Positions 251-57,469 of a stretch of 64,000 nucleotides of DNA are shown piece by piece (within the stretch, counting starts at the first letter, position 1; each line of letters opens with the position of its first letter). Source of the stretch: Orbicella franksi (Eukaryota); NCBI GenBank assembly GCA_964199315.1, contig OZ116699.1, positions 37,386,001 through 37,450,000 on the forward strand. The letters run 5' to 3'. The notes beneath the pieces are model-generated. The model had not been told where the DNA came from. It saw nothing but the letters and a program-made list of their open reading frames with translations, and searched no databases. The translations under genes were made by a program, and so were the position numbers.

Positions 251-2245
251 GTGATTTTTGGTTATGTTTTAGGTCACCTCAAAAGTTATGACCCACTGTA
301 CAAAAGAAATGGATTGCATTCTCCAATAGTGAGGAATCTCTATCAACGTCATTATAGCCCAATTGGAGCCAGGACTCTGTCACAGATCGAATATGAGCTA
401 CAACAAATTGAGAACAGGATGGATGAAGAAGAGGAAGAAGAAAGCACTGGGGGATCTGCAGCAGTGGAAGAGGAAGAAGGAGAGGAGGAAGAAGGAGAGA
501 AGGAGGAGGAAGAGGAGGAAGAGGCAGGAGAAGAGGAAGAAGAAGAGGAGGAAGAGGAAGGAGAGAAAGAGGAAGAAGAANNNNNNNNNNNNNNNNNNNN
601 NNNNNNNNNNNNNNNNNNNNNNNNNNNNNNNNNNNNNNNNNNNNNNNNNNNNNNNNNNNNNNNNNNNNNNNNNNNNNNNNNNNNNNNNNNNNNNNNNNNN
701 NNNNNNNNNNNNNNNNNNNNNNNNNNNNNNNNNNNNNNNNNNNNNNNNNNNNNNNNNNNNNNNNNGGAAGAGTGGGAACAAGAAAAAGGTGAAGAAGAGG
801 AAGAAGAGGAAGAGGAACAAGGTGAAGAAGAAGAAGAGGAAGAAGAAGAGGAAGGAGAGGAGGAAGAGAAAGAAGAAGAGATGGAAGGCGAGGAGGTGGA
901 AGAAGAGGAAGAAGAAACAGGAGAAGAGGAGGAGGAAGAGGAAGAGGAAGCTGGTGAAGAGGAAGAGGAGGAAGAAGAAGCAGCTGGTGAAGAAGAAGAA
1001 GAGGAGGAGGAAAATGAGGGTGAAAAAGTAGAGGAGCAAGAGGAAGAGGAGGGTGAAAAAGAAGAGGAGGAAGAGGAAGAGGAAGGCGAGAAGGCAGAAG
1101 AAGAGGAAGAAGAAATGGGAGAATGGATGGAGGAAGAAGAAGAAGAAAAGGGAGAAAAAAATGAGGAAGAGGAGGAGGAGGAGGGTGAAAAAGAAGAAGA
1201 AGCCGAAATTGAAGAGGGAGACAAAGAGGAAGAGGAGGAAATAGAACAAGGCAAAAAAGAAGAAGAGGAAGAAATAGAGGAAGGCAAGAAAATAGAAGAA
1301 GAGGAGATTGAGCAAGGTGAAAAGGAAGAGGAAAAGGAAATAGAAGAAGGCAAAACTGAAGAAGAGGAGGAGATTGAAGAAGGTGAAGAGGAAGAAGAAG
1401 AGAAAATTGAGGAGGGTGAAAAAGAGGAGGAAAAAGAAGAAGAGGAAGGTGAAAAGGAAGAGGAGGAGGAAGCTGAGACAGGTGAATACGAAGAAGAGGA
1501 AGAAGAAGAAGAAGGTGAAAAAGAGGCAGAAGAGGAAGAGGAACAGGGAGAGAAGGAAGAGGAGAAGGAGGAAGAAGAAGGAAAAGAGGAAGAGGAGGAG
1601 GAAGAAGAGAAGGGTGAGGAACAGGAGGAAGAGGAGGAAGAGGCTGGTGAAAAGGAGGAGGAAGAGGAGGAGGAAGAGGGTGAGAAAGAAGAGGAGGAGG
1701 NNNNNNNNNNNNNNNNNNNNNNNNNNNNNNNNNNNNNNNNNNNNNNNNNNNNNNNNNNNNNNNNNNNNNNNNNNNNNNNNNNNNNNNNNNNNNNNNNNNN
1801 NNNNNNNNNNNNNNNNNNNNNNNNNNNNNNNNNNNNNNNNNNNNNNNNNNNNNNNNNNAAAGAGGAGGAGGAGGGAGGTGAGAAAGAAGAAGAGGAGGAA
1901 GAAGAGGAGGGAGAAGAAGAACAGGAGGAGGAGGAAGAAGAAGGTGAAAAGGAGGAAGAAGAGGNNNNNNNNNNNNNNNNNNNNNNNNNNNNNNNNNNNN
2001 NNNNNNNNNNNNNNNNNNNNNNNNNNNNNNNNNNNNNNNNNNNNNNNNNNNNNNNNNNNNNNNNNNNNNNNNNNNNNNNNNNNNNNNNNNNNNNNNNNNN
2101 NNNNNNNNNNNNNNNNNNNNNNNNNNNNNNNNNNNNNNNNNNNNNNNNNNNNNNNAAAGGAGACAAACAAGGACTTACAAAAGAAAGACGTACTAACCTA
2201 CTGAAACTTCTAAAAAAGATGAAACTGGAGTTGGACAGTGCTTAA
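251..2245 (+). CDS. Glu-rich low-complexity protein; probably the large terminal exon of a gene starting left of the window
   Basis: One open frame from 251 (GTG) to TAA at 2243-2245. A good acceptor (tttttggttatgttttag|G) lies at 272/273. A unique segment GHLKSYDPLY...QQIENRM is followed by about 1.7 kb of G-E-K-E(4-8) repeats and a basic tail KGDKQGLTKERRTNLLKLLKKMKLELDSA*. The Glu frame is identical on both sides of all three N-runs. Confidence 0.6.
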   Translation: MIFGYVLGHLKSYDPLYKRNGLHSPIVRNLYQRHYSPIGARTLSQIEYELQQIENRMDEEEEEESTGGSAAVEEEEGEEEEGEKEEEEEEEAGEEEEEEEEEEGEKEEEEXXXXXXXXXXXXXXXXXXXXXXXXXXXXXXXXXXXXXXXXXXXXXXXXXXXXXXXXXXXXXXEEWEQEKGEEEEEEEEEQGEEEEEEEEEEGEEEEKEEEMEGEEVEEEEEETGEEEEEEEEEAGEEEEEEEEAAGEEEEEEEENEGEKVEEQEEEEGEKEEEEEEEEGEKAEEEEEEMGEWMEEEEEEKGEKNEEEEEEEGEKEEEAEIEEGDKEEEEEIEQGKKEEEEEIEEGKKIEEEEIEQGEKEEEKEIEEGKTEEEEEIEEGEEEEEEKIEEGEKEEEKEEEEGEKEEEEEAETGEYEEEEEEEEGEKEAEEEEEQGEKEEEKEEEEGKEEEEEEEEKGEEQEEEEEEAGEKEEEEEEEEGEKEEEEXXXXXXXXXXXXXXXXXXXXXXXXXXXXXXXXXXXXXXXXXXXXXXXXXXXXXKEEEEGGEKEEEEEEEEGEEEQEEEEEEGEKEEEEXXXXXXXXXXXXXXXXXXXXXXXXXXXXXXXXXXXXXXXXXXXXXXXXXXXXXXXXXXXXXXXXKGDKQGLTKERRTNLLKLLKKMKLELDSA

Positions 2246-2402
2246 AATATACAAAGGTTTGGGCAATACCAATCACAATGACTCTGTGATCATTTTAGGG
2301 GATAGAGGAATACAAAAAACAAACTTGCCAAGACCTGTGTCACTGACATTAAATCACACACAATCTCAAGGAAAATTGGCATGCCATCAAGAGGTCACTT
2401 AA

Positions 2403-3050
2403 GGTGGCTCAAAACAGTTTCCAGCACTTAGATTTTGATTAGTCATTATAACCACTCTTTATCACTTGATGCTACAATCACGGTATCAAAACACTGCCCA
2501 ATCATTGGTGAACATGTTGTTATCATTTTTGTGACACAATAGGTTACTCTAGCAAAAGTATGACCTGCTAAAACACCCTTAATTACAGCTATAAGGGCTT
2601 ATAATTCAAAGCGGCATGGTGAATATTTTTAATATTATCAAATTTTGATAAGCATGATGAGATGCAACTTTTGGCAAAGTTTCAAAACATTCTGTACATA
2701 GGGTTCAGAGCCACCTTAAAATTTCAAAACTTTAAGGTGGCTCTGAACCCTATGCACAGAATTTTTTAAAACTTTGCCAAAAGTTGCATCTTATCATGCT
2801 TATCAAAATTTGGTAATAATAAAAAATTTAACCATGCCAGTTTTGAATTATAAGCCCCTAAAGCTATAATTAAGGGTGTCTTTAGCAGATAATACTAATG
2901 CTATGATAGCCTATTATGTCACGAAAATAATAACAACCTGTTCACCAATAAATGGGCATTTTTTTGATACCATGATTGAAGCATCAAGTGATAAAGAATG
3001 GTTATAATGACCAATCAAAGTCTAAGTGCTGGAAACTGTTTTGACCCACC
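2403..3050. mobile_element. Inverted dimer of a ~313-bp TTAA-flanked MITE (Kolobok-type ends)
   Basis: TTAA|GGTGGCTC...GAGCCACC|TTAA at 2403-2715, a 12-bp spacer, then TTAA|GGTGGCTC...CCCACC|TTAA at 2736-3050. The second unit is the reverse complement of the first. A TTAA TSD with purine-purine termini is the Kolobok signature. Confidence 0.75.
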
Positions 3051-3273
3051 TTAAAGCAAAGCACTTGCAAATATTAACTTCAATTTTTATGTGAAAAGCA
3101 ACAAAAAAATGCAATCTTGTAAAAAGGATCTTTCTATTTCATTCAAAAAGAGCTCTGTCACAAGACAGTTCATCCTAAAACACATGCCCGTAATGTTTGC
3201 AGCTGTTTGTGATCTGCCTTAATCTTCTTTGGGCTATTATATATTAAATTTTTTTGTTGTTTTTCTACCTTAA

Positions 3274-3470
3274 AGGACCCTAGTCAGCCTCTGCCATTTT
3301 CCATGCCATTAAAATTATTGTTATTGCATGGTGAAGTAAAATCTTATTGCTTCACTGTAAATTGTGTTTCTGAGAGTATGTTTAATTATCTGTAGTAGCT
3401 TCACAGTGACTTCCTTTGTTTTGACATGGTCCAAATAAAATACAATAGCCAAACTCCTGCATGTAAACAC

Positions 3471-3498
<28 letters not shown>
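3274..3498. mobile_element. 225-bp non-autonomous DNA transposon, Kolobok-type
   Basis: TTAA|AGGACCCTAGTCAGCC ... GGCTGACTAGGGCCCT|TTAA: 16-bp TIR with one mismatch and a TTAA TSD. Confidence 0.75.
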
Positions 3499-3502
<4 letters not shown>

Positions 3503-4299
3503 AAAAACACTATTACTGACAATTTATTTCAAATATGAGGTTTCTTTCAGTATGAAATGACTTAAAACTTTGCAGCAATTAGCTCTTTTAATAAATAATG
3601 TTTGCAACAGGAATATCATGAAATTGAACCACAAGCGTTTTTTTCAACAAGCATCTTCAGACTTTAATGTAAGCTTTTTAATGTGTAAATGATTAAATAG
3701 CATTTTAAAAGAGAAACAAACTTTGGTCTTCTTTTTTAGACTACAAGTGAGCAGATCGATATGAGTCCAGATTTCTTGTCAGTCAACTAGTTGAAAACAT
3801 AATTGGAACTGACATTGTCCTATGTTAGGAGGCCCTTTTTTTCAGGAAACACGTAAAAAAACATCAGAAACAACAGTATTTGAGAGTGAATCCTAATTAA
3901 TTTGAAGTTGATTTATGGGAGTATAATTTTCTCACAACTCTCAATTGTCAATCAAAACCGCCAGGAGATATTAACATATAATTTATAAAATTTATGAACA
4001 ACATTTATCTTGACATTTTCTGTCCAGCTGACAAGAATCAAGTCTTGGTGCATTTTTATCAAAATGTGGCAATTACCTAATGGTGGTGTGGACAGAGGAT
4101 TTTAGAGAGGGGGATTTGAGATATCCACTAGGGGGAACCGGGTGAATCCTATCCTGGAAAATTTTTTAAATTGAGGTCCTTGCAAATGGGATTTCTGGCA
4201 TTCTGAGGCCAAGTCAGCAAGTTATAATTTGTTTAATTTAGGGGTTGAAGATCGAAGCACAGCCAGGATGAGACATAATCAAAATTACAATAAAAACAT

Positions 4300-5483
4300 T
4301 CGCTGTCTAAAAATTTTCAAAAAAGAACATGAGCTTTCGGCTGTTGTTCTACAGCCTTCAACAGATCAAAAATGGAATGCAAAATAATAAAATATATCCA
4401 AGAAAAGGCGAGATAAAAATAATAAAAAGGACAAAAGCAAAGTAAAAATGTGTAAATTAGGTGACTATTGTTTAAAAAGAATACTAAACTTGATTGGAAT
4501 CAGCTTAGAATTATTGTCAGCATGCTTGGTCACAAAGGTGTGCCAAGCTTCCAAAGTTTTTCTAATGCGAAAGGAGCCTTTTCAATGATGCTAGAATTGC
4601 CAAAATCTATGCGATAGTTGAATGACCATGCATGGTTCGCAATGTTTGATCCATTAGCACATGTTTTGACATTCCTGATATGTTCTTTCTTACGAGTTTC
4701 AAAACACCGCCCAATTTCGCCTACATAACACAATCGGCACAGGGTGTTTTATAAATCACTTTCGGTTAATGTTCAATAGCTGGTCTGAATTTGGGAGAAG
4801 GAAATTCTTGTTGCAAAGTCTTGAAGGGCTTATTTACAACTTGAATGTCGTACCTTCAAAGAATTCTAGTCAGTGGTTGTGTGACACCATTGATGAAGGG
4901 AAGGACAGCAAAACTGTTAGGATTCTCTTGAGGCACAGCCCATTTAAAAAACATTCAAACAAATTCTTCAGGTGTGGGGATGGCATGGGGATGGCATATT
5001 GATTGTGTTGGAAATAACATAGGAGAGACAGTTGTTGGCTCGTAGAGAATCAGTGACGTGGTTGATTTCGGTATTTTCCCTTGTGATGTACCAGGGAGTT
5101 TAATTGCACAGTGTAAGAGGGTCTCAGCTGTGCTAATCTTGTGGTGTTTGTCATGGTGAGAAGAAAAGTCTAAATATCTGTCCGTGCGGGTTGCTTTGCA
5201 ATATACACCAATATTGACTGTGTTATCCTCGTAGGAAACCAAAGTATCTAAGAAAGAAATATGTTGGTCAGATTCCTCCTCAATAGTGAATAAGATGTGT
5301 GGATCAATGGAATTAAGTGTAGCATGAAAGGAGTTGACAGCATTCCTTTTGATGATACAAAAACTGTCATCCACATAGCGTTTCCATACTTTAGGTTGTA
5401 CTTCAGACGTGTTGATGGCCACTTCTTTGATCGCTTCCATGCACGAGTCGCCACCACAGGGCTGACAGGGCTACCCATCATGT
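4300..5483 (-). mobile_element. Decayed, 5'-truncated Penelope-like retroelement (RT plus GIY-YIG endonuclease)
   Basis: Frameshifted RT segments MGSPVSPVVA / WKRYVDDSFCII...FTIEEE...FLD...TDRYLDFSSHH, a GIY-YIG segment YVGEIGRCFETRKKEH...IANHAW, and a PLE-like 3' end (ctgttgaaggctgtagaacaacagccgaaagctc on the minus strand). Multiple frameshifts and stops. Confidence 0.85.
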
Positions 5484-6367
5484 TCTTTTTTGAAAATTTT
5501 TAGCCAATGAATGTTTTTATTGTAATTTTGATTAATTCAGGGGGTTTAACCCCTAATCCCCCCCCCCCCCCCCCCAGAGCAGCCCCAGCTATGAAGCTCA
5601 GAAATCAACTTTGTTTGTCATTGCTGCTGGAGTTTCTTTGTCAATACTTTAGACCGTGAAATAATTGTAAGGAAAGAGTCACAAAAGGGAGCATTAGTAA
5701 CCCCCTGTCAGATTTAAACTTTTGGGGCAGCCTTAAATATTGACCACGGACCAAGTTGACTATCAATCATTGACCAAATGATCACTTAACCACTCCCATA
5801 TAGGCATATTTTAAATAACGTTTTTATATGAACATCAAAGTCATGACACACACTGGACAACTTAATGTATCCACTTGTAACCTCCTTAGGCCAAGATTTA
5901 CATCGTACATACACTTATAGAATGTAGCATTCACATTTTATCTTTTTCTTAATTCCAGTTTTTGTTATATTTATTATTATAAAACATTTTTTTTATAAAT
6001 TAACAAGATTTAAATTTGCATGCACTTTTCTCACCATTTCCTACTCAACAAACCTGGATCTGACTTATTGATAGTTTTGCTCATGGAAATATAATTATTA
6101 TCAAATGAAGCAAAGCTTCACATAATGAGCAAAGTATACTGAGTTTGAAGTCTATTGTTTCAAAAATTGACATGACCATAGCTGTCCCACTTAGTTCCAA
6201 CACTTAAATAATAAATAAGCTAGTCACCATGCATATTATTGCCATGCAGTTATAGTATTTGGAAACAGTACTGTAAACTTGAGAAAATGTCATTCAAGAT
6301 TGACAATGATTAATCACAAGCTAAGAGCCTCAAGCTAGAATGTGAATGATCCAGATCATAAGGTAAA

Positions 6368-9099
6368 TCACTTTTCTTCTGACCTTAATTGTGGTAGACA
6401 GAAGTTATAGAAAGAATCTGACTTGAAAACTTCCTCCAAGTGCTTCCACTTAACCCAGCCATCATTTTGAAGGAGTGTTTTGTCAGCTTTTCCATAAAAA
6501 TGTGGATCCTACAGAGAAGAGAATTTATTTTTATTTTTGATTTATTGAGCAAGAATTCAGTATCTGGCTGACCTTTTGCCATGGTCACATAAGCATGTTG
6601 CAACAGATAATTATATAACAGGTGAAGAATAAAGAAGTCCCCCATGAATATTGACCAGGAATACAAATCCTCAACTTTAAAATAGCTTTTGTTGCAGTTC
6701 TCAGCAGATTGACATAAAAATGAGGTGATTTAAAATGAGGTCATTCATATTTTGTTGGCTGATTTGCTTTAGAACCAATTTGCCCTCCTTGTGTGTGAAC
6801 TTGATATTGCAGGCTCACCTGCGGCAACACCTACTGAAGTTGTAACAGAGTACTGAGTACAGTGAACGTACAGGAGATAGTGTGGGTTACTCATCCACAA
6901 TCCTTTTTTAATTATTTCTTTACCAAAAACATAGGCAGTATTTCCATGCTAGATAGAGTTTCTATTGTCTAGTATCACAATATAAACTGACACCTAGGTA
7001 TCAAATGGGTCTTACTGCAATCAAGAAGTGAAAACCTCTGTTTGTCCTGCAAACACCAACTAATGTCTTGGAAGAAGCATCCATATCTCCACCTTATAAG
7101 TAGAACATAAAATTGAAAAAACAGTTTCATTTAATCACCACTCCATAGAAATTTACTTATTGACACAGCATCTTATTCCAGGTCAGCAATTCAAAACAAT
7201 GTGGTTCAATTTCAAGCTTGTGCAGTCTCCTAATCCAGTAGCATTATATACTGAAAATTGTCTCCAGGGCCGGCTTGTTCGAAAGCCAGTTAACGCTAAC
7301 CCAGGATTAAAAGTTAATCAAAGTAACCATTTTTCTTGTATAAAAATGTTTTTCATGCTTATGTTTTGTGTAGTTTGAGATTTTTCAAACTCAAACCTGA
7401 AGGACAAACAATATAAACAGAAAACAGCACCCAAAGTTACAAAACTGAAATCAAAATTCTCACTAATTTTGGGTTATCTTGATCAGGCTTTGAGAAACCC
7501 AGCCCAGGTACATAATAGGATACAGGCAGAACTTCCTTCACTCTTGGCCATATTATACCCTGGGGTAATGGGCCAGACATAGGTGAAATATATTGCTCAA
7601 AACAAGTTACCTATCATGACTGGTGAGCCAAAGTGTTTAAAATGTTCCAGGAGAACTAATGTCACTTCTTGTTCAGCACAGTCCCCTCTTGCGACATGGA
7701 CAATTTTGCTACAAACCTGAAAAAAAATATTTACTCTGACATTACAGTCATGCACCATTTTTAACAGCACACACACAGACAATGTTTCAGTTCAATACAA
7801 TATGAAGTTCTTTGCTATATAGAGGGATCTCTTGTGTACAATTTTTAATAACTGTACTTAAAAGCAAAAACAAATGCTTGCAAGAGTATAAAATGTACTT
7901 ATTGAAAGGGTTGTCACAAAGTTTTAAGGTAGCTTTGCTCGTTGGAGTTGCTGGCTGAATTTGCAATCTTTTCAAAAGAACTGGAAGACTAAGCCAGCAG
8001 GGTTGCTAGCTGAGATGGTGAATTTTGCCAGCAGCCTGCTATACTTTTGACAACCCTTTTATCAGGTCCAGTCAAACCTACTCCAAACGTTTCATCCATA
8101 TAAAGACAAGCTTCCACAGAACCAATCCATTCCCTTGAGCCAATGAAAGAGCTTGGCTTGTCACCGATATCCACCAAAGTCTGCTGTATCTCACGAAGAC
8201 TTGGTACCAGTGGAACCTCTCTTTTACTTTTCAAGACATGACGTACCCATGAACAAATGGTCTGAAGTGTCCTGTAGCCACAACCCCAACCCTTCAATAA
8301 AAAATGTGCAGTATGATAAATTAATTTTGTATTAAATCAAATTTAAATTTTCTTTTTTTAACACTACACATTAACAGAGGATAATTTCAGTGTGATAAAG
8401 CAGTGATTACAACCCATATCTGGCCATTAGCAAAGTCCCCAGACTGGAGCAGATCTAGGGTTTGGTGAAGGGCCCTTCTAGGGGGGTCTGTGGGAATGGG
8501 ATCAATGAGTAACATTCTCCGAGGTTGTTGAAGTCAAATTTGGCGGCTACAGAATCAAGAATTTGTTTAACCTAGCATGCATGCAATCTTCTCCTAGTGC
8601 CTTAAGGCTTCAAATATTTGAAAGTAGACTGTCCAAGTGCTTCCCTCTACTTCAACAGACTGTCCAAGTGTGTCATTTCTTCTTCAGGGAAAAGTGTTCT
8701 TGCACGCCTTGCGTGCCTATGTTCATGTTTTCTGGCCGGGAAAAAAAAAATATTACGAATAAATGAATGAATGAAAACTTTATTAACGTGTCGGTGTATT
8801 TACTAAGTCGTGTCAGTGTTATCACTAAGTCTTCTTCTGGCTTTTTGATCTACTAACATTTTCTGAGTCAGATTCCATCTTGCCACAGGATTTCTAGATC
8901 AAAATTTGATAACAAGGAGTCGAAAAGCTAAAAAACAGCCTTTGAGCTTCACTGCTTAATTGTCCTACACTCACCTATGACTCACCCTGTCATCTATTCC
9001 ATCCACATTGTAATGGTAGAACTCATATTTGCCCCGGACAATAGCAGACTCAACGACTTCCGAAGGTAAATCCAGGCCCTCGTGTACATCACCCAACAT
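6368..9099 (-). CDS. UFSP1: Ufm1-specific protease 1 (short UFSP, peptidase C78), 215 aa
   Basis: Exons 9099-8986, 8291-8082, 7716-7611, 7092-7016, 6508-6368; all GT-AG and phase-consistent. The protein MLGDVHEGL...[14 protein letters not shown]|[11 protein letters not shown]...EWIGSVE...GGDMDASSK...DPH...FYNFCLPQ contains the catalytic Cys box and Asp-Pro-His box and lacks the long N-terminal domain of UFSP2. Confidence 0.92.
7262..7510. repeat. Short MITE-like interspersed repeat in UFSP1 intron 3
   Basis: Imperfect inverted ends (cagggccggcttgttcgaaagc...taacccagg ... gggttatcttgatcaggctttgagaaacccagcccag). Boundaries approximate. Confidence 0.5.
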
Positions 9100-46564: not shown

Positions 46565-49500
46565 TTACTCCCCAAGTCCTTCAGGACCGAGAGCTAAATA
46601 TCCTCCATCGACCGCCAATTCTGCACCAGTTATTGCTGAAGCATCTTTGCTGCACAAGAAGGCAATGGTTGCTGCTACCTCTGCAGGCTCACAGAACCGA
46701 CGGTTCATCTGTCGCTTGGCAACGGCTGGCTCAATGTTCTTCCTCTCACCGAAAACTGATTCTGCCTGCAAAGACATTTTTCAAGATTATTTCCGGAATG
46801 CAAATCAGAAATTAAACATCTCAAATACTGGAAACTTAGGGCCATGAGAAATGGAGAATTTACCAAATGATAAAAGCCCGGGATAAGCCAAAACTCACAG
46901 AGACACCGAGGTCCTCGTTTCAAAATCCGAGAAACACACGAAAACGAAACTTCGCGACTCATCAGGATTGCGAGATCATATCAAAAGTCCCCGAGACCCA
47001 CGATTTCAAAGCATGATTCAAAACTGTGGATAAGACCCTGGGGACGAGGTTGATGTTGCTCAGGGAAAATAGGGAAGAAGAATGGCCCTGGGAACAAAAG
47101 TGTTGTCGACTTGCAGCCCGGATGAAGGCTGCTTTGGAAAATGATTAACCATTTGTCGCGAGAGCCCTTTGACGATGAGTCTTCCATTCCGTGGTTCAAA
47201 GTCTCTCCACGTGTGACTCCACAACAAGAAATACATTAAGTAAAAACTGCACGATTGTGTCAGTTAAGTATAAATAGGGCCGGTTAACTTACTTAATAGT
47301 TTATTTTGATAAATGTCCTTACAAAAAACATTACATTCCCCGACGAAAGGGAATTAACGAACAAGGAACAAACTAGGAAAGAAAGAACCAACCAACTAAG
47401 GAACGAAAGAACGAATAAAGGAACGACTGAATGACTTGATGGCAGACCTCGGTCACAGTTTAACAAAATTACAAGCAATAAATGAAGTATTACATGTTCA
47501 GTCCAGATATATCCGGGACAAATAGAGTTTACTCTGATTCCATGAGCGGACAAATCCAGGGCCATACACTTGGTCATTGTTGTTACAGCGGCTTTGCTTG
47601 CCTGATATGTCCAGCCGGAATGGTAAGGCATAACATGGTGGGCCTGGACACTACTTATGTTCACCACAGCACAGTCCCAGGCGTCTGCTATGGAATCAAA
47701 ACAAACAATAAAATTTACAGTAAAGAACTTCATGAATGTTGAACAGCTTGACGCTTTGAAAAGCGACACAGACGCTTGTATGTTGCGAGCCAACAATTAA
47801 CCAAACTACAATGAATGTATCTCACTATCTGAATGTCGCAGCTTTTGAACGCATCGCCCGGAGCACGTTTCGACCCATTTTTTTTTTTTTTTTTACGAAT
47901 TTGGCTACAACTCTGCATACTTTTCTTCCAATTTCTTCACCTACTTATATTTGTTCTTTTATACATCGCATGCATTTCTTGAAAAGATATGTCAAGGAAG
48001 ACGCCAGAAAAATTAAGCTCTTCCGTACGTGTAGAAATACAGCTAGCCTCAAATTTTTAGTGAGCTGAAAAAGGGCACTCTGCTCTTGCTTTTGTTACAT
48101 CTTTCTTTTGATAATGGCATTTCTGAGATGAAAAATAGTAACGGTTTTTCATGATTGAAAAACGTTACTCTGGTTTAAAAATGTAAAAATGTTAGTAAAA
48201 ATTCTTTTTGTAAAAGTCCCAACGTTTCGGCTAAAACTTCAGCCTTCATCAGGGGAAAGTGACAAGGAATTTGTTGAAAAGGTACGTTCTTATACTATGC
48301 AAATCGGCAAATCGGCAAATCGGCAAATCGGAGCTAATTATGTTCTGTCCCATAGGGCTAAATTTAAAAATTCGTGCGGCAAGTGCATACCATCATCACG
48401 GTTCAGCGGATTCCTACAAGTGTTAATTTCCCATGCTTCCAAAATACGTTTGTTGCGCCAATTTGTGCTTGTACGTAAGATCTTTGAAGATACCCAGGAG
48501 ATGGTGTGGCCAGAGTGTAAACAATGTTCCGCTAAAGCTGACTTGTGCGAGTATTTGTTTACAACCGCTTTTTGATGTTCTTTGAGCCAGGTGGAAAATT
48601 TTCGTTTCGTTCCTCCGATGTAGCTTTTGTCACAACCTTGACAGGGAATTGAATAAATTGCGCCACGAGTCTGATCTTTCGGGACTGGGTCTTTTGGTTT
48701 GGGAAATAAATTGCCGATGGTATGGTGTGGTTTTAAAGCAACTTTGATATTGTAATTGCTTAGGATTCGCTTAATCGGTTCCGTAGTGCCCTTGACATAC
48801 GGTAAAATGCAGAAACCTTTTTTGTCATCCGGTGGAGTAGCAGGCGTTTGTTAAGAAGGCCGTTCCGGTTTACTTGCATGAATAACAAAGCGTTTCGGGT
48901 AGCCATTCGCCCTGAGTGCCGCGATCACATGTTTCATTTCCTTTGATTGTTGGTCAACAGAAGACGGGATAGCTCTTTTGTTGTTGTTGTTGTTGTTTTT
49001 TCACAATTGCTATTAACATTCTCTTTTACTGTAAATCCCGGCTTTCGTTTTTCCATAACTAGACTTGGCCGCCGGCATCTCTTACATTACCACCAATCCG
49101 ATGACATTATTTCATGACCTGACTGTGTGGCAAACTGTAACATGAAATGCAATACAAGAAAGCTGCAAAGAGTGAGAATGATCAAAATTTCAGAAGACTG
49201 AAACGGAATTCGAAAAGAATGACTTGATTTGCGCAAGTGACGCGTCAAAAACAGAGATGGAGCAAAAAAATCGCGGGAGGGGGGTGGGGGAACTTATAAA
49301 ACGCCGGGAGTATCCCTTGATTACCGACTATACCTTTAGTCATATATGGATAACAGGCTTGCACCATGTTGGAATAGCCAATCACATTTATTCCCAAAAC
49401 TCTATCCCAGTCCTCTTTTGTAGAATCCAGACCTGTGAAGAGAATACCATAACAAATTGGTTAGAACTGTCAGAACTAGTGTTCGGAACATGAATAAGTC

Positions 49501-50787
49501 TGCGAATATATCCCAATCGATATGTTAGCTAAGTGATATGTGTTAACTAATATGCTAAAGTTTTATTAATTATATTACATCACCCATTACAGCCAACCGT
49601 AGAATAGGATGGAATTTTTGTACAGCGGCCACTCCCACTTTCTTTTGCTGACCCGCCCACATTCCTTCGTGTTGTGGTGAGTTGACTGTTAGCAAATTAG
49701 AATGTGAACAGGCTCCGGCTGGAAGGGTCTGACCGCAGCTGGAAGGGCCAAAAAGGAACTGACTGAGAGTGAAGCGGCCGAGGGGGGATGACCTCTTTCC
49801 CCTTCTCTCCCTTCTCTCCTCATTCTTCCCGCACTCCCTTCCAGTTCGCCCCATCCTCGACTAAAGAGCCTGTTCAGAGGCTATCAGCGAATTGAAGCAA
49901 TGGGTCGAGATACGAATAGACCTTATCACGGTTTTCGACGCCATCTTGACGGGTAGGCAAAGCGGTCGGAAATTACAATAGAGGTAAAGAAACTTGACCT
50001 TGCCTCACTTCGCTTACAGTCAACTCACGGGTAGTCTCGTCTCACTACGAAAGAAAGTGGGAGTGGACGCTGTACAGAAATTCGAGCCGTTGATTCTAGC
50101 CTGAAATGTCAGTCATCTCCCGCCCTCATCGAGATTTCTCCTCTCGCCCGGAGATAAGGCTGATAGCGGGAGATCCTGACATTTCAGCCTAGTGATTTCG
50201 TTAGTGTTGACATCATTGCGTGACCTAACGTGACGTTTTGATACATTCTTGAAAACACTTCCCGGCTGCCTGGTATCTAGACACAAAATACGTGGCACAA
50301 TTGCACTGAGGAAATATGAAATAATTGACTATTGTTGAAAATGGGCCAGTTTAGTTATGCAAATCTTCAGTAACAAGGCAACTTTTTATCAATGAAAAAG
50401 TTTCTTCAGTCGACTGACGACTGGGTTGCTGCTTTCTATCCCAAACTTACCCTTACGAGGCGCGCCAATGCCTGCGTTGTTCACCAGAAAATGAATTTTT
50501 CCTTCATGTTCTTCAGCAACTTTCTTCACTCCTTCTACGCACTGCTCTTTATCTGCTACATCCACTTTATAAAACTTGACATCGTATCCAGCGGCCGTAA
50601 GTTCACGCTGTAGATGTTCACCAGCAGGTTCGTTGATATCAAACGCGGCTACTGAAGCTCCATCGTTGACAAATCGGTTCACAGTGGCTCTCCCGATCCC
50701 CGAAGCTCCACCAGTTATGATACACACCTTATTAGCAAATCGACCTTTTGTGTGCTGCGAGTCAAGCGGAGGGTTTGATTGCGCCAT
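46565..50787 (-). CDS. Classical short-chain dehydrogenase/reductase, paralogue A, 276 aa
   Basis: Exons 50787-50451, 49432-49334, 47687-47494, 46765-46565 (831 nt, GT-AG). Motifs: TGGASGIG, an acidic residue at the end of beta2 (AAFD, NAD(H) type), NNAG, NISS, YQASK (YxxxK), GIRVNSICPG, VDGG. Confidence 0.92.
48190..48985 (-). mobile_element. 5'-truncated Penelope-like fragment (GIY-YIG end) in SDR-A intron 2
   Basis: Minus-strand translation PYVKGTTEPIKRIL...KPKDPVPKDQTRGAIYSIPCQGCDKSYIGGTKR...KEHQKA...SALAEH...RILEAWEI...LNRDDG, followed by a PLE-like 3' end ctgatgaaggctgaagttttagccgaaacgttgg. Confidence 0.85.
50097..50191. repeat. 95-bp miniature inverted-repeat element
   Basis: CTAGCCTGAAATGTCAG ... 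CTGACATTTCAGCCTAG. Confidence 0.55.
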
Positions 50788-52569
50788 CTCTGACTGAGTG
50801 CACTACAACTTTGGTTTATGTAACGCGAGTGACACTCCTAATATGGCGTAACGCGTGACTTGAAGTGCGAGCTTTCCATTCGACCTAAATTCCGGTGTGA
50901 ATTTCTGGAAATTTTCCGGTTGACTGCACCAGAGTGGAAACGATAAGCCGCACTTTTGTTCGCTTCGAATTTTTCGATGGCTTCAAGGTTTAAATCGCAA
51001 ATATAGAAGCAAACAGAACACTGATAAGTCGACATTGTGACTTTTTTTGACCACGACATACAAATAACAACGGCAGCGAAAACGTCGCAAAACAAAGGGT
51101 TTAAAGTAGTACAATGGCTTTGCACGCGTTATAAATCTTTGCACATTTCGTAGCCAGTCTATGCATATTTTTTCATTGGAATTAAACTCTTTCTTGACGA
51201 ATTCAGCTGTGGCTATTATTTATCGACATACAAGTGGCAAGATTCTAAAGCTGAAATATTGATCTATTTTTGAATACGCGTCGCCGTCAGTCCTTGGGTG
51301 AGATGTTCCAACTCGCTAGGATCGCGGCCAAAAGACCTAGCGCTGAAAGGAAAATTACAAATTTACATAATTTCAGAAAAATAGGACAACCTCCTGAGGT
51401 ACACCCAAATTTTCGAAAACATTTCATCCCGGAATATCCGGAATTTTGGGTTGAATGGTTCGCTTTTCGGAAATTCAACAAATTCCAGATTTTCTGCAAC
51501 TTTCCCCAGGAAATGTCCGTACCATTCAATCCCGTTTCGAAAATTTCGGAATTTTTGGTCGAATGGAAAGCGCCCTGTAGTCTTATCTATGTCGCGCATC
51601 GCAGAGCAGAAACGCAGAAGAGCTCACCCCGGCGCGGTCCTCCACATGGAATATAGTGTGTGAACAAGCTTCTCCACTTGAGAATTAGACTGGGGAGAGG
51701 GAAAGAGGAAAACGACCCCATATCGCCATAAGACCTGAGCTGGAGCTATAGAGGTATCCGTGGATAGCCTTGCATACGGCTGGCGCGACTAAATTGAATT
51801 GACCAATCAGGATTCAGCAGGCGAGAAAAACTAACAGGAAAGGCATTGAAATCGGGCAACTTTTCTCGCTGGAGATGGCTTTAAATATTCACGAAAAGTG
51901 TCACTGACTCCAGGCGCGATTACCGCAAGTTCAGAATTAAAGAATTAAGGACGTCGAAGCCCTGATCAAGAGCACTGGACCTCAAGTTGCTTTCCACTAA
52001 TTGATCTTATTTTAAATTTTATTGCGGCACAGTTTACAAGCACGGGTGACTTTGTTGGCCATCGGCACGACTTACGAACGACCTTTACATGAGAACAGCC
52101 AGATCGTAGGCCAGTACGTCATCATTAGAAACAAATAATTAACGTGTAGCCACTCATAGTTCAATCCGGGAGTGGGGGACTTCCATGTGCGAGGGGATGC
52201 TAGTTGGAAAATTTGAATTTAAAGGAGCCCATCTGGTATGGCTACAGTTTTATTTGGTTCCTAAAAGGTACGACTTTAAGAAACACATGACAACGCTTTT
52301 TATTACTTTTTCGAGTGAAATCAAAAAGATATCTTGACGGCTTAAAATAGTGGCGTTTGACCATGGAGCCTAAGTGAGATTGAAATCCGTGATTTCCACC
52401 CCTAAGCGAGTCGACAAGCATCCCCACCTTTTCACATGGGAGTCTCCCCCGCCCCAAGAATTTAAATCTTGTTTCTAATCCACCAAAGACCTGTACACCC
52501 CTAATCTCTTATTTTTCAGTCCGTTTCGAAGGATTCCCGCGGCCATTTAGTTTTACGTGAATTCGACGG

Positions 52570-55500
52570 CTACTCTCCAAGTCCTTCAGGGCCTAGAGCT
52601 AAATATCCTCCATCGACCGCCAAATCTGCACCAGTTATAGCTGAAGCATCTTTGCTGCACAGGAAGGCAATGGTTGCTGCTACCTCTGCAGGCTCACAGA
52701 ACCGCCGGTTCATCTGTAGCTTGGCAACGGTTGGCTCAATGTTCTTCCTCTCACCCACAATTGATTCTGCCTGCAAAGACATTTTTCAAGATTATTATAA
52801 TGCAGATCAGAAATTAAACATCTCAAATACTGGAGAGTTGGCTATGCTACTCATAGTTAAGTAATATATCAAACACGAAGACAGTGTTTGACCACATTTC
52901 CACCCCGCGGACAGAGTTGAAAATACTTCGCGGAGTGGTGGAGTGTTTTGGACGAATTTCGAAGTGTTTGGAAATGTGGGTAAACACTGTTATGAGAGTT
53001 TGACATATGCTGCGGCGAAATATTTTATGGTTTTCGCATTTCCTTTCTAGCTTTTAGAAATTTCTTTGTATTGTTATTTTGCGTGCTTTGTGGTCAGTCC
53101 TATAAGGCTGTACTTACCCACCTACGACGTTTGGAACAAAGAAAGCTATTATCCCATTGCTTTCTCTGAGAGACGGGAGGGAAGGGCGGACGAAAGAACG
53201 AATAAACGAACGAGAAAGGAAGGAAGGAATGAACGAACGAACGAGAGTGAGCGAATGAGTGAGTGATTGAGTGATTGGGTGATTGAGTGACTAATAATGA
53301 TAGCAATAGTATACAAAGAGTTGGAAGACTGCCACAGTTTAACATAAAGACAAGTAACACGTGAAGCGTCACCATTGCAGTCCAGGTATATCCGGGAGAA
53401 ATAGAGTTTACTCTGATTCCATGAGGGGATAAATCCAGAGCCATCCTCCTGCTCATTGCTGTTACAGCACCTTTACTTGTCGCGTATGTCCAGCCCATAT
53501 CGACAGCTTGAGCACGGTGGGACTGGACACTACTAATGTTCACCACAGCACAGTCCCAGGCCTCTGCTATAGAATCAAATCAAAGAGTTATTTGAGCAAA
53601 CCTGTGAATTCCCCAGTGAATGATGATTGAAATGAGCTAACCTTTACGTAATAAGAATTTACCTTTTCAATAAAAAAACACACTCATGCTTTAAAGCGGA
53701 AATTTTACAATAAGCAATAGCCTAAACCTCAAAACTGAAAATGATGATTCTGACGGTAAAATTGTATAAAGACCTTTTCTCCGAACTTCATGACCACAGC
53801 AGAAAGGTCATTTGAAAGCTGTTCACCAACGCTGTAACACATCGTTGACAGGTTTTTGCCAACCTTTTCGTGACCTTTTCCTAATCTCCTTCGCAACATC
53901 TGCGTCGCCGTTGCGTGACTTAGGCCAGAGCAACTGAGATTAACACCTTCCCCGACCAACAAATGAACCGGCAATTTGAACACACATGGAAAAACAAGCT
54001 TCCGTCTACGTTTCCCGTGATCAACAGTTCTAACAACAATTTAATTGTTGCAACTGGCGAAATAACACGTTGACTATTGAATAATTTGACGCTTTGCACA
54101 GCGTCGAATTCACAGACGCTTGTATGGCTGTAAGACAACCGCATATAGTTGAACCTCTCCATAACAACCATCTTAGGGACGTTGCTGCAGAGGGGTGGCC
54201 GTTATGGGGAGGTAGGGGTGTAATATGATACCTTTCTTCGGACTGTACAACATTTCATTTGTAAAAGTTCGTATTGTAGCCTATATATTCGACGTAACAC
54301 AATGGAAAATAGACCAATTATATAAAAACCAAACCAAAGCAAAGAACAAAGACGCGCGCCACGTGGTGAAGTTTCGTCACTTTTTTTTGATAAAAAATGG
54401 GGTCTTGCACACTACGTTCGTCAGTTGTTGAGTAATTGACCGTTGTCAAGAGGTAATATTTGGCTTTTGGGATTCGCTTTAGGGGCTGCTTCCGTAATAG
54501 AGAGGTTGTTGTTTTCGAGAGGTCAAAATAAGAGAGAATGCATGGACCGTCTGCCGGAACGAAAAAAAGTGCCGGGCCGAGGTAGAGAGGTGGCTGTTGT
54601 AGAAAGGTGGCCGAACAGTGGATGTACATATCTAAATGTTGCTTTTTCTAACGCATCGTCCGAAGCACATTTCGACTCGTGTTGTTGCGAGTTTGGCCAC
54701 AAATGCTGCATGCTTTTTTCCAATTACTTGACCTATAATTAATATTTGATCTTTTATACATTGCACACATTTCCTCAAACGATATATCAAGGATGACTTC
54801 CAGGTACCATTTGCCGACAAGCTAAGGTCTTCCGTGTAATAAATAAAACTAGCCTCATGCATAATTCCGCCAGAGAAAAAAGTATCCTGGTGTTGCTTTT
54901 TGTTTTCAAAATGACATTAACGAGAAGAAAAGCAGTCAATTTTTTTTCATTAATGTCAATTACAGGCAACTCAGAGTTTTCTCTTTTACAGCAAATCCAG
55001 TTTCGTTTTCTCATATCTAGACTTTGCCGCCGGCATCTCTCACATTGCAACTTGCCAAAGACGTTTTCGACGTCAAAATCTTTAAAGTTCAGTATACCAG
55101 AAAGCCTAAAGGAAGCCAGTCTCCATTATTGTATGAGGTGGCTGTGTGGCAAACTGGAACCTTTACAGAATAGCAGAAATGAAATAAGAGAAAGCTGCAA
55201 AGAGTTAACCTGCGTCGAGGGCGCTACCTACCGCGGGTTATTTACGAGTAAATTTCCGTCTGCGAAGCAGGCTACAAAAAGTAAGAATTATCAAACTTTG
55301 AGGATATTGAAACGGAAATTCATTTGCAAGCTAAAAAAAGTAGAGAGAAAAGTGACGGGAACTTATACAAAGCGTCTAGGGTCACGTGATTACCGACTAT
55401 ACCTTCAGTCATAAATGGAAAACAGGCTTGCACCATGTTGGAATAGCCAATGACATTTATTCCCAAAATTCTCTCCCAGTCCTCTTTTGAAGAATCCAGA

Positions 55501-56208
55501 CCTGTGAAGAGAATACCATAACAAATTTCAGATCTCAGTGTTAGGATCACAAATACAACATGGTTATGACTATGCTAGCTGAGTAATATATGTAAAGGTT
55601 TTATGGCTTCAGAGGTTTCATATATTACCAAGCTAGCATCCAATTAGCATATATTGACCATTTGAAGTAAAAAAAAAAGGAAAAAAAAGAAACTTATAAA
55701 AGTCGTGCAACGAAACACTACCCTCCAATTCAATCCCTCACAAGTTCAGTTGTCTGACATTGACGAGACTCTCCCCTGTCAGGTAATGCGATCGAGTGTG
55801 ACTTTCACCGCACAGAATTACGCATCACGCATAATGCTAATAACTCATTGTTTACCCCCATCTCTAAGTCCATTTGCTTGTAAACTTTATAACGCTGAGT
55901 GTTTTAATGTAGACGGAATTTTAGTTCTTTTCTTTGATTCTTTGTAGGCGAGAGCATCCCACCCTCTCTCCCGGGTTTTGAGGTGCTACTAGTTTCGTAG
56001 CTTTGCAATAAATGATAAAGATGAGTTCGTCTCCTAATTGCGTGACTTCACGCGACGATTTAAAAATGGTAAACAGTTTGCTGCTTCGCTTCGCTGCGCA
56101 GCAATATTAAACGAGTAGCAAAACAACATAGGTATTGAGAGTGAAGAATGATCATCGCAGTTAATTTTCCAATTTAAGCAATTGGAAAGAAGAAGCCTGA
56201 AAAAATCA

Positions 56209-56242
<34 letters not shown>

Positions 56243-57182
56243 GATACCGGTGCGATGCTCTACCAACTGAGCTATGAAGCCACACATTGGGAGCGAGGTC
56301 AATTAATTGAGTTCATATCTTCCCGTGAGGAGTGAAATGATGTGAAGTTTATATGAAATAATTCATATATGAACTGCGGTTGTAGATGAGAGTGAAGAAT
56401 GATCATTCTACAACCGCAGTTCATATATGAATTATTTCATATAAACTTCACATCATTTCACTCCTCACGGGAAGATATGAACTCAATTAATTGACCTCGC
56501 TCCCAATGTGTGGCTTCATAGCTCAGTTGGTAGAGCATCGCACCGGCATCGCGGAGGTCACGGGTTCGAATCCCGTTGAAACCCTGATTTTTTCAGGCTT
56601 CTTCTTTCCAATTGCTTAAATTGGAAAATTAACTGCGATGATCATTCTTCACTCTCATCTACAACCGCAGTTCATATATGAATTATTTCATATAAACTTC
56701 ACATCAACATAGGTATTGTGGTAATTGTGGAAAATTGGCCAGTTTAAAATCAAGCAAATGTTCAGTTAAGTAAAAATGCAATTTTATGTCAATGCAAAAT
56801 TTTCGTCAGTTGACTCGGCAGGCTTTCTGTCTGTCGCAAACTTACCACTACGAGTCGGAGCAACGCCTGCGTTGTTCACCAGAAAATGAATTTTTCCTTC
56901 GTATTGTTCCGCGACTTTCTTCACTCCTTCTACACACTGCTCTTTATCTGCTACATTCACTTTATAAAACTTGGCATCGTATCCAGCGGCCGTAAGTTCA
57001 TCCTGCAAATGTTTACCAGCAGGTTCGTTGACATCAAACGCGGCTACTGAAGCTCCATCGTTGGCAAATCGGTTCACAGTGGCTCTCCCGATCCCCGATG
57101 CTCCACCAGTTATGATACACACCTTATTAGCAAATCGACCTTTTGTGTGCTGCGAATCAAGGGGAGGGTTTGATTGCGCCAT
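52570..57182 (-). CDS. Classical short-chain dehydrogenase/reductase, paralogue B, 276 aa
   Basis: Exons 57182-56846, 55501-55403, 53566-53373, 52770-52570. Exon sizes and phases are the same as paralogue A. Motifs TGGASGIG, NNAG, NISS, YATSK, VDGG. An in-frame upstream ATG at 57203 is possible. Confidence 0.92.
56209..56281 (-). pseudogene. tRNA-like cloverleaf (anticodon position GGT), head of the repeat unit
   Basis: 73 nt. Acceptor stem GGCTTCA/TGAAGCC, D-arm GCTC-AGTTGGTA-GAGC, T-arm ACGGG-TTCGAAT-CCCGT. The anticodon stem is imperfect and position 33 is C rather than U. Confidence 0.6.
56512..56584 (+). pseudogene. tRNA-like cloverleaf, second copy (anticodon position GGC)
   Basis: ggcttcatagctcagttggtagagcatcgcaccggcatcgcggaggtcacgggttcgaatcccgttgaaaccc. 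Intact A and B boxes; one acceptor-stem mismatch. Confidence 0.6.
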
Positions 57183-57469
57183 CACTGGCTGCGTTAAGTC
57201 CAACGTTTGATTCTCAGATCGCCCTTTCGTGTTCGCGTGACTATTAAACCGCAGCTTAAGTGAAGGTCACGCACGGCGGAACCTGTTTATATGCAGCGTG
57301 TACCTTTGCATGTACCTTACCTTGGATCATGATACCAGATTCTAGGTATCATGATCTGATTGGTTAAATCGCCCATTTTTGACAGCTTTGAGATAAAGAT
57401 TTGACAGATCTTGACAACAGCGTGTAAATTTGCATAATTTTCCGAGACCTAGGAAGATTGCGTTTAATG

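Follow-up and report, generated by a model that had tools for sequence, protein, structure and literature searches.

One fast-evolving copy in a tandem pair of short-chain dehydrogenase/reductase genes of the stony coral Orbicella franksi

Two genes for classical short-chain dehydrogenase/reductase (SDR) enzymes, here called A and B, lie in tandem on the minus strand of a 64,000-nucleotide stretch of the genome of Orbicella franksi (contig OZ116699.1 of assembly GCA_964199315.1, positions 37,386,001 to 37,450,000 of the forward strand). The whole stretch is referred to as the window, and its numbering is used for all positions given without another accession. Both genes have four coding exons of 337, 99, 194 and 201 nt, and both encode stop-free products of 276 amino acids. 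In codons 107-215 copy B has changed far faster than the rest of the gene and than copy A, and this one-sided, regional acceleration, in a pair of which both members are transcribed and spliced, is the main subject of the present account. That it reflects a changed substrate specificity of B is a reading to which we give even chances.

Structure and intactness of the gene pair

The gene models were assembled from open reading frame pieces and splice sites, and all six introns have GT..AG ends (Table 1). For B, the model is confirmed exactly, exon by exon, by a 1452-nt transcript contig from a coral sample of the Joint Genome Institute (JGI). This contig, L013 (encoding protein P0001), is a fully spliced B mRNA that aligns at 99-100% identity to 57263-56844, 55502-55403, 53568-53372 and 52771-52030, and it supplies untranslated regions (UTRs) of 81 nt at the 5' end and 540 nt at the 3' end. 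For A, another JGI contig (P0115) has exon 1 spliced to exon 2 before it runs into intron 2, and RNA-seq junction reads support A intron 1 as well as B intron 3. A first-pass annotation, made by a model from the letters of the window, had described both genes as intact, 276 residues long and equal in exon sizes, and this description is borne out by the models, by L013 and by the junction reads. No further copy with more than 30% identity was found in the 497-Mb genome, in which A and B are the sole close copies. Homology between the two ends 29 nt upstream of the ATG, and their promoters are thus unrelated.

An assembly artefact or a pair of collapsed alleles was considered and rejected: the introns of A and B are wholly different, B is present both on an independent genomic contig (L020, 98.8%) and in transcript L013, and both loci are found in sequencing runs filed under several organism labels. 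Transcript L013 has Val70, as in A, and Thr65, where B of the window has Ala70 (codon at 56973-56975) and Ala65; of the eight N-terminal A/B differences, one is thus a polymorphism or specific to a strain. Nearly all RNA reads carry a synonymous C>T at 52702 (Arg233 of B).

Table 1. Coordinates of the two SDR genes, their divergent segments and the repeats in their second introns (window numbering)
Feature	Position	Strand	Remarks
Gene A, conserved copy	46565..50787	-	Classical SDR; coding exons 50787-50451, 49432-49334, 47687-47494, 46765-46565 (stop included)
Gene B, fast-evolving, more highly expressed copy	52030..57263	-	5' UTR to at least 57263; 3' UTR to 52030
Gene B, coding exons	57182-56846, 55501-55403, 53566-53373, 52770-52570	-	From open reading frame pieces, splice sites and transcript L013
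Segment 1 in A, IGAPRK, codons 107-112	50452..50469	-	Loop following NNAG; His93 of human 17beta-HSD14 corresponds to position 107
Segment 1 in B, VAPTRS	56847..56864	-	Five of six residues differ from A; K112S in B only among all homologues compared
Segment 2 in A, codons 159-187	47563..47649	-	beta5-alphaF loop and first half of helix alphaF, with Y173 and K177
Segment 2 in B	53442..53528	-	15 of 29 residues unlike those of A; 2-3 nucleotide differences in each of six codons
Segment 3 in A, PGYIWTEH, codons 203-210, exon 3 part	47494..47517	-	Continues in exon 4 at 46751-46765 (AESVF)
Segment 3 in B, PGYTWTAM, exon 3 part	53373..53396	-	Remainder (AESIV) at 52756-52770 in exon 4; Leu195 of 17beta-HSD14 corresponds to position 214
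Interspersed repeat of ~830 nt, A intron 2	48148..48977	.	At least 57 genomic copies, 90-96% identity; absent from B
Two older repeat families, B intron 2	53577-54046, 54143-54613		69-78% identity; about half of the intron

Family, fold and predicted cofactor

Both proteins belong to the classical SDRs and have the full set of catalytic and cofactor-binding motifs. They match the Pfam families adh_short_C2 (PF13561) with 215.6 bits (cut-off 27; 9.5e-64) and adh_short (PF00106) with 177.8 bits (cut-off 26.6). TGGASGIG (25-32), NNAG (103-106), Ser158, Tyr173, Lys177 and the Pro-Gly pair at 203-204 are identical in A and B, and Asn128 and Asn134 are conserved in an alignment of 32 family members; the earlier observation that TGxxxGIG and the catalytic Asn, Ser, Tyr and Lys are kept in both copies is thereby confirmed. 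An AlphaFold2 model, which like the Foldseek searches was made from a B-like protein only, shows the strand and helix order of an SDR (predicted local distance difference test score, pLDDT, 91.2; predicted template modelling score, pTM, 0.91). Template modelling (TM) scores of 0.83-0.87 were obtained to many classical SDR structures, NAD-dependent bacterial ones included, at about 33% identity. Asp50, at the C-terminal end of beta2, is invariant in the 32 family members and aligns with the Asp of NAD-dependent 17beta-HSD14, and the glycine motif TGGASGIG is without a basic residue. By this sequence proxy A and B are probably dependent on nicotinamide adenine dinucleotide (NAD(H)), and the cofactor proposed in the first-pass annotation fits the invariant Asp50. 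None of the NCBIfam equivalogs (glucose 1-dehydrogenase, BudC, FabG and others) scores above its curated cut-off, the best reaching 207.6 (294), 201.3 (215) and 189.7 (270), so that no functional name can be transferred.

Human 17beta-hydroxysteroid dehydrogenase type 14 (17beta-HSD14, HSD17B14, also retSDR3; PDB 5ics, 1yde and 5hs6) is the best structural match, with a Foldseek E of 1.8e-25 and TM scores of 0.83-0.89, and is also among the best sequence matches of solved structure (E 2e-35). It is like the coral proteins in its classical SDR fold, in the Asp at the end of beta2 and in the register of Ser, Tyr and Lys, but it differs in that identity is about 33% and the coral Ser-to-Tyr loop is two residues longer. 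Its contacts to estrone are made by His93, Gln148, Trp192 and Leu195 (PMC8787064), of which only the Gln is kept, at position 165 of B and not of A. Orthology to HSD17B14 was rejected because the ligand contacts are not conserved and identity is so low, and no steroid activity is implied by the likeness. The top sequence match of solved structure is an uncharacterised SDR of Acinetobacter baumannii (8eh2, E 3.7e-40), with which, as with bacterial "glucose 1-dehydrogenase" and BudC-like SDRs (PRK08265, PRK07231, MBtsdlDhBudC), A and B share a GPEGLG-type C-terminus and the PGxxWT motif.

The closest proteins are those of other stony corals. A spliced transcript from another JGI coral sample (L014, designated Ax) is 88% identical to A, and for one more coral transcript (L018) the identity to A and B is 78% and 70.5%, respectively. 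Outside the corals identity is about 50% (chiton, sponges, Lingula and a Nematostella "cyclopentanol dehydrogenase"), and Chloroflexota proteins named "glucose 1-dehydrogenase" are 52-54% identical. A search for literature on tandem duplication of coral SDRs, or on a coral "cyclopentanol dehydrogenase", found none.

Differences between A and B and their place in the fold

A and B differ at 45 of 276 residues, only eight of which lie within residues 1-106. The differences gather in three segments, all of them as quoted in the first-pass annotation: IGAPRK in A and VAPTRS in B after NNAG, a 29-residue stretch following the catalytic Ser in which 15 residues differ, and PGYIWTEH-AESVF in A against PGYTWTAM-AESIV in B. 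In all, 25 amino-acid differences fall within the 47 codons of the segments and 20 within the other 229 (Fisher p 3e-11), whereas codons with synonymous differences only are not enriched there (2 of 47 against 17 of 229, p 0.75). By the Nei-Gojobori method, synonymous divergence (dS) between A and B is 0.134, 0.151 and 0.147 for codons 1-106, 107-215 and 216-276, and nonsynonymous divergence (dN) is 0.038, 0.192 and 0.022 for the same regions, giving dN/dS ratios (omega) of 0.28, 1.27 and 0.15. Thus dN varies 5- to 9-fold between regions while dS is about flat, and at the regional scale dS does not rise with the replacements. The sole rise in dS is in the 29-codon core at 159-187, where a value of 0.27 is based on about 5 synonymous differences. 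A compensating pair of frameshifts behind the runs at 107-110 and 163-169 was tried as an explanation and rejected; the nucleotide alignment has scattered point differences there, and no gapped alignment is better.

In the AlphaFold model of the B-like protein beta4 spans residues 100-103, alphaE 118-143, beta5 151-156, alphaF 171-194 and beta6 196-203, with short helices at 209-226. Segment 1 is placed by the model in the loop after NNAG, segment 2 half in the beta5-alphaF loop and half on alphaF, and segment 3 in the beta6-alphaG substrate loop. Confidence is lowest at 161-170, within segment 2 of B, with a pLDDT of about 71. The positions that align with His93, Gln148, Trp192 and Leu195 of 17beta-HSD14 are 107 (Ile in A, Val in B), 165 (Met, Gln), 211 (Ala in both) and 214 (Val, Ile), so that three of the four differ between the copies. 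On alphaF the changes are at 174, 175, 178, 182 and 184-186. The main subunit interface of classical SDRs is made up of alphaE and alphaF, and alphaF mainly serves there rather than lining the pocket; the alphaF changes are accordingly more likely to touch a subunit contact.

Acceleration of one copy

Pairwise dN is 0.058 between A and Ax, 0.092 between A and B and 0.112 between B and Ax. Branch-specific rates were estimated with a codon-likelihood program of our own, validated by the agreement of its M0 log likelihood (lnL), -2997.776, with the -2997.773 of IQ-TREE under GY+F3X4. Two trees were used, ((A,B),Ax), here T1, and ((A,Ax),B), here T2. Over the whole gene the stem of B has an omega of 1.39 with one tree and 1.21 with the other (p 4e-5 and 3e-4), the background being 0.34; the A branch, at 0.26-0.30, evolves at the background rate of the family. 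In codons 107-215 omega of B is 2.6-2.8 against 0.22-0.25 for the background (p 2e-7 to 3e-6), and in the rest of the gene it equals the background at 0.31-0.37 (p 0.76). The pocket and subunit-contact residues of B have changed about ten times faster than the family norm.

A plain comparison, without a reconstructed ancestor, was made by counting a change as copy-unique when only one of the two copies departs from at least 5 of 6 outgroup sequences. Nonsynonymous copy-unique changes number 31 in B and 11 in A, synonymous ones 8 in B and 10 in A (p 0.003), and the middle of B has 24 nonsynonymous unique changes to 2 synonymous ones. Residue changes unique to B are distributed 6, 17 and 0 over the N-terminal, middle and C-terminal parts (p 0.0016). 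Nine of them replace residues invariant in all other corals compared (K112S, Y140F, K145E, A161S, P166A, S169M, A175T, K185R and C186R); at Q174A the Gln is present in every other copy compared except one of Desmophyllum (Dp4, His), and T184S and C186R alter positions at least 90% conserved across the 32 family members, from bacteria to animals. Only B is accelerated, and the pair therefore holds one derived enzyme rather than two that were both selected. The first-pass proposal of two enzymes selected for different substrates has to be narrowed to this extent, A being at the background rate. That B is a pseudogene or a dying copy was considered and rejected, since omega outside the middle is at background, the last 61 codons carry no B-unique residue change, and B is the more highly expressed copy.

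The standard branch-site test gives a strong signal of positive selection on the stem of B, with twice the log-likelihood difference (2dlnL) at 17.9 under T1 and 9.4 under T2 and 13-15% of sites at omega 9-13; on the A branch the test gives no signal. Many B-unique codons differ by two or three nucleotides, such as 169 (TCC>ATG), 174 (CAG>GCG), 186 (TGT>AGG) and the cluster at 108-110, and the fit is much improved (2dlnL 37.6) by a model in which double and triple changes have rates of their own. How the selection tests fare under that model is taken up below, where the interpretation is weighed.

Exon histories and probable gene conversion

For the whole gene T1 and T2, on which the age of the duplication relative to the species of L014 depends, are indistinguishable (approximately unbiased test, AU, 0.49-0.63). 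The exons disagree among themselves. Informative sites divide 5:1:1 in exon 1 and 4:0:0 in exon 4 in favour of (A,B), and 1:4:1 in exon 3 in favour of (A,Ax). With parameters left free for each partition, exon 3 favours (A,Ax) by 11.3 lnL, with (A,B) rejected (AU 0.018 with the codon model, 0.056 with the DNA model), and exons 1 and 4 together favour (A,B) by 11.9 lnL (exon 1 alone by 7.0), with the alternative T2 at AU 0.085-0.13 and not formally rejected. At position 165 B keeps CAA, the codon of the outgroup, and ATG is common to A and Ax. All of the exon 3 signal comes from nonsynonymous sites, so that parallel change in A and L014 is possible, and it depends on one related transcript.

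The introns are mostly unalignable and offer little as a neutral yardstick, but their alignable patches are 72-86% identical (K about 0.29), roughly twice the exon dS of 0.12-0.14. Taken with the exon trees, this points to a duplication of somewhat greater age than the dS of the exons would indicate. Repeats were looked for in intron 2 only, and there the unalignable part is largely later repeat insertion, the ~830-nt element in A and older families in B. We infer that gene conversion has probably homogenised exons 1 and 4 and, with less certainty, exon 2, while exon 3 escaped, and that it has probably sharpened the contrast between A and B; it cannot yield the ratio of replacement to silent changes or the asymmetry between the copies. 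Patchy conversion, which the first-pass annotation had named as a possible source of the contrast, is thus in keeping with the conflicting exon trees and with the low exon dS, and is at odds with the even regional dS. Duplicated enzymes with conversion-resistant specificity regions are known, in which flanking exons are sisters within a species and the specificity exon keeps an older, divergent history. Unlike those cases, the A/B mosaic is carried by a small number of sites, those in exon 3 being all nonsynonymous, and is seen against the single transcript L014.

Related arrays in other stony corals

Desmophyllum pertusum (MU825896.1) has a tandem SDR array of at least five copies with exons of 337, 99, 194 and 201 nt, of which four (Dp1-4) were modelled, and Oculina patagonica (CM126636.1) has a gene, Op1, that encodes 278 residues, with exons 3 and 4 of 197 and 204 nt and otherwise as in A and B. 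The Oculina genes form a convergent pair in which the inverted copy is without exon 3. Desmophyllum and Oculina SDRs are 78-88% identical, and their tandem copies vary in the same three segments as A and B; they are less diverged (dN 0.03-0.045), and none has the unique set of B. The Desmophyllum copies vary at the same positions as A and B to the extent of 14 of 34 (p 2e-4). Exon 1 of the array has a dS of 0.04-0.07, against values of up to 0.31 in the middle of the gene, up to a 5-fold reduction.

Two peculiarities of these loci were noted. In the Desmophyllum contig the public annotation fuses two tandem SDR copies (1561-4731 and 5344-8729) into one 276-residue model (L015, 1561-8729). In Oculina a segment of about 27 kb is present twice and nearly identical (L016 and L017, CM126636.1, 35.15-35.20 Mb); it holds the SDR gene, the inverted copy without exon 3 (products of 211-314 residues) and a 3'-5' exonuclease gene, and is either a segmental duplication or an assembly duplicate.

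Expression

Both genes are transcribed and spliced, and B is the major transcript in the adult polyA libraries examined, so that neither copy is silent. In two polyA RNA-seq runs of one study filed under the species label (X23 and X24), the B intron 3 junction (52769>53372) is crossed by 21 and 120 reads, 141 in all, and the A intron 1 junction (49430>50449) by 3 and 2, five in all; read depth over B exon 4 and its 3' UTR is 20-180. B is thus 7- to 60-fold more abundant than A in polyA RNA. Sequence words from both loci occur in RNA libraries of 12-14 studies.

Most X24 reads placed on A exon 3 and on the 5' half of A exon 1 come from B by cross-mapping and were left out of the A counts, for they carry the B letters at 47643, 47656, 50637, 50669, 50704, 50761 and 50767; an apparent joint that goes back 5857 is the same artefact. 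Two short stretches, one in B intron 3 (52864-52902) and one intergenic (51126-51155), are matched over only 30-40 nt by as many as 105 and 77 reads of X24, which extend into unrelated sequence on both sides; some abundant transcript or repeat elsewhere apparently contains the same fragments.

Repeats in and around the genes

Several genomic loci of the ~830-nt repeat in A intron 2 have adjacent inverted partial copies, as in a young foldback element or one resembling a miniature inverted-repeat transposable element, and the RNA reads at 48494-48893 probably derive from its other copies. For the two older families in B intron 2 there are dozens of scored copies, from 589 candidates at first look. 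B intron 1 has two tRNA-like sequences found by ARAGORN, Thr-GGT and Ala-GGC, at 56209-56281 (-) and 56512-56584 (+), inverted to each other and flanked by perfect inverted repeats of 49-69 nt (56338-56455 and 56638-56706). They are probably a pair of tRNA-derived short interspersed nuclear elements inserted after the duplication, since A intron 1 is without them. Just 3' of A, at 45659-45970 and 46000-46275, lie direct and inverted copies of an element of about 125-180 nt that are 94-95% identical, and a distant relative of it (68%) is found just 3' of the B coding region at 52163-52455.

Interpretation and alternative explanations

The most likely reading, which we put at even chances, is that B acquired a changed substrate specificity, by asymmetric neofunctionalisation or by specialisation. 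A and B are a lineage-restricted tandem pair of cytosolic-type classical SDR oxidoreductases, in which A keeps the usual sequence and rate of the family and is weakly expressed. In B the Rossmann and cofactor-binding part, the catalytic Asn-Ser-Tyr-Lys set and the C-terminal third have stayed under normal purifying selection, and about 17-24 residues of codons 107-215 have been exchanged, in the beta5-alphaF and beta6-alphaG loops, on alphaF itself and in the loop that follows NNAG. With these replacements B would accept a different small alcohol or ketone, and its subunit interface may be altered. Conversion between A and B would have held exon 1, exon 4 and probably exon 2 similar in the two copies and spared exon 3, thereby exaggerating the contrast. 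Steroids, oxylipins and symbiont metabolites, which had been proposed as substrates, find no support in any result here.

Several results weigh against a change of substrate. About 8 of the 15 changes in segment 2 lie on alphaF (171-194 in the model), so the earlier statement that the divergent segments line the pocket is upheld by the three 17beta-HSD14 contact positions that differ but not by this half of the segment. The overlap with the variable Desmophyllum positions may simply mark sites under weak constraint, and fits either recurrent tuning or weak constraint. After an equal number of substitutions a neutral copy would have had a chance of 0.11-0.23 of keeping its frame open, which makes intactness by itself weak evidence. 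The expression data come from two libraries of a single study; in two libraries of another study neither gene was seen. Once multi-nucleotide terms are allowed, the branch-site 2dlnL falls to 4.05 (p 0.022) under T1 and 1.81 (p 0.089) under T2, so that the dN/dS tests suggested with the first-pass annotation are strong under the standard model and give p 0.02-0.09 under the richer one. In the middle region the test of the omega of B against 1 gives p 0.04-0.10, and site models lose significance likewise (M2a against M1a, p 0.06, or 0.50 when B is left out). What is observed is a large acceleration specific to one region, with an omega estimate above 1; positive selection is not robust.

These tests bear on the possibility that constraint on B was relaxed in one region only, its loops and alphaF drifting more or less neutrally under continued selection for fold, cofactor binding and catalysis, as in a carbonyl reductase of broad specificity, with no new function. 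Given that an omega of 1 is not firmly rejected, that the multi-nucleotide branch-site null fits nearly as well as its alternative, that the site models weaken and that the most changed loop is also the least confidently modelled, we give this explanation about one chance in four. It has to contend with an omega estimate of 2.6-2.8 in every setting, with the excess of nonsynonymous over synonymous changes in the middle of B, with changes at several positions conserved from bacteria to animals and with the higher expression of B. A contrast that is mostly a conversion artefact, in which an older duplication had exons 1, 2 and 4 homogenised and exon 3 simply shows ordinary divergence between paralogues, seems improbable to us. 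The opposed exon trees, the outgroup codon at 165 in B, the intron patches and the low dS of Desmophyllum exon 1 are all as it would predict, but conversion can produce neither the 31 to 11 excess of nonsynonymous changes in B, with equal synonymous counts, nor an omega of 2.7, and the nearly flat dS between A and B speaks against it. The exon and intron evidence is itself softened, by the purely nonsynonymous signal of exon 3 with its alternative of parallel change, by T2 surviving for exons 1 and 4, and by the repeats behind much of the unalignable intron 2.

The location of the alphaE and alphaF changes (Y140F, K145E, Q174A, A175T, K185R and C186R) raises one further explanation, in which B ceased to co-assemble with A and so escaped interference from its paralogue, substrate choice being secondary. 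Its appeal is that more than half of the changes in segment 2 sit on a helix of the main subunit interface of classical SDRs, Cys186, at least 90% conserved in the family, having become Arg in B. The loop changes at 107-112, 161-169 and 206-215, more than half of all, are not in interface elements; we consider it the least probable of the alternatives and quite unlikely as the main cause, and interface divergence may contribute. For the robust-clade stony corals as a group, a changed substrate in B would belong to a wider pattern, which we advance tentatively as less likely than its opposite: a lineage-restricted SDR array that evolves in modules, in which conversion keeps the cofactor and C-terminal exons uniform within a species and the specificity exon escapes, to be re-tuned repeatedly in independent lineages at the same pocket positions, as in B and in the Desmophyllum copies.

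A tandem SDR duplicate with divergent substrate loops is in itself a common and expected kind of event. The pair also illustrates how gene conversion at the scale of exons can go together with divergence in a 10-kb tandem, and it serves as a caution that positive selection is overstated by standard branch-site tests where codons differ at several nucleotides. If B has a new substrate, some 20 changes in three loops and one helix would suffice to switch the specificity of an SDR, a compact natural experiment. Hardly any of the enzymes by which corals metabolise steroids, oxylipins and xenobiotics have been characterised, and if the modular array is real, it would give these corals a compact and evolvable group of oxidoreductases acting on small molecules particular to their lineages.

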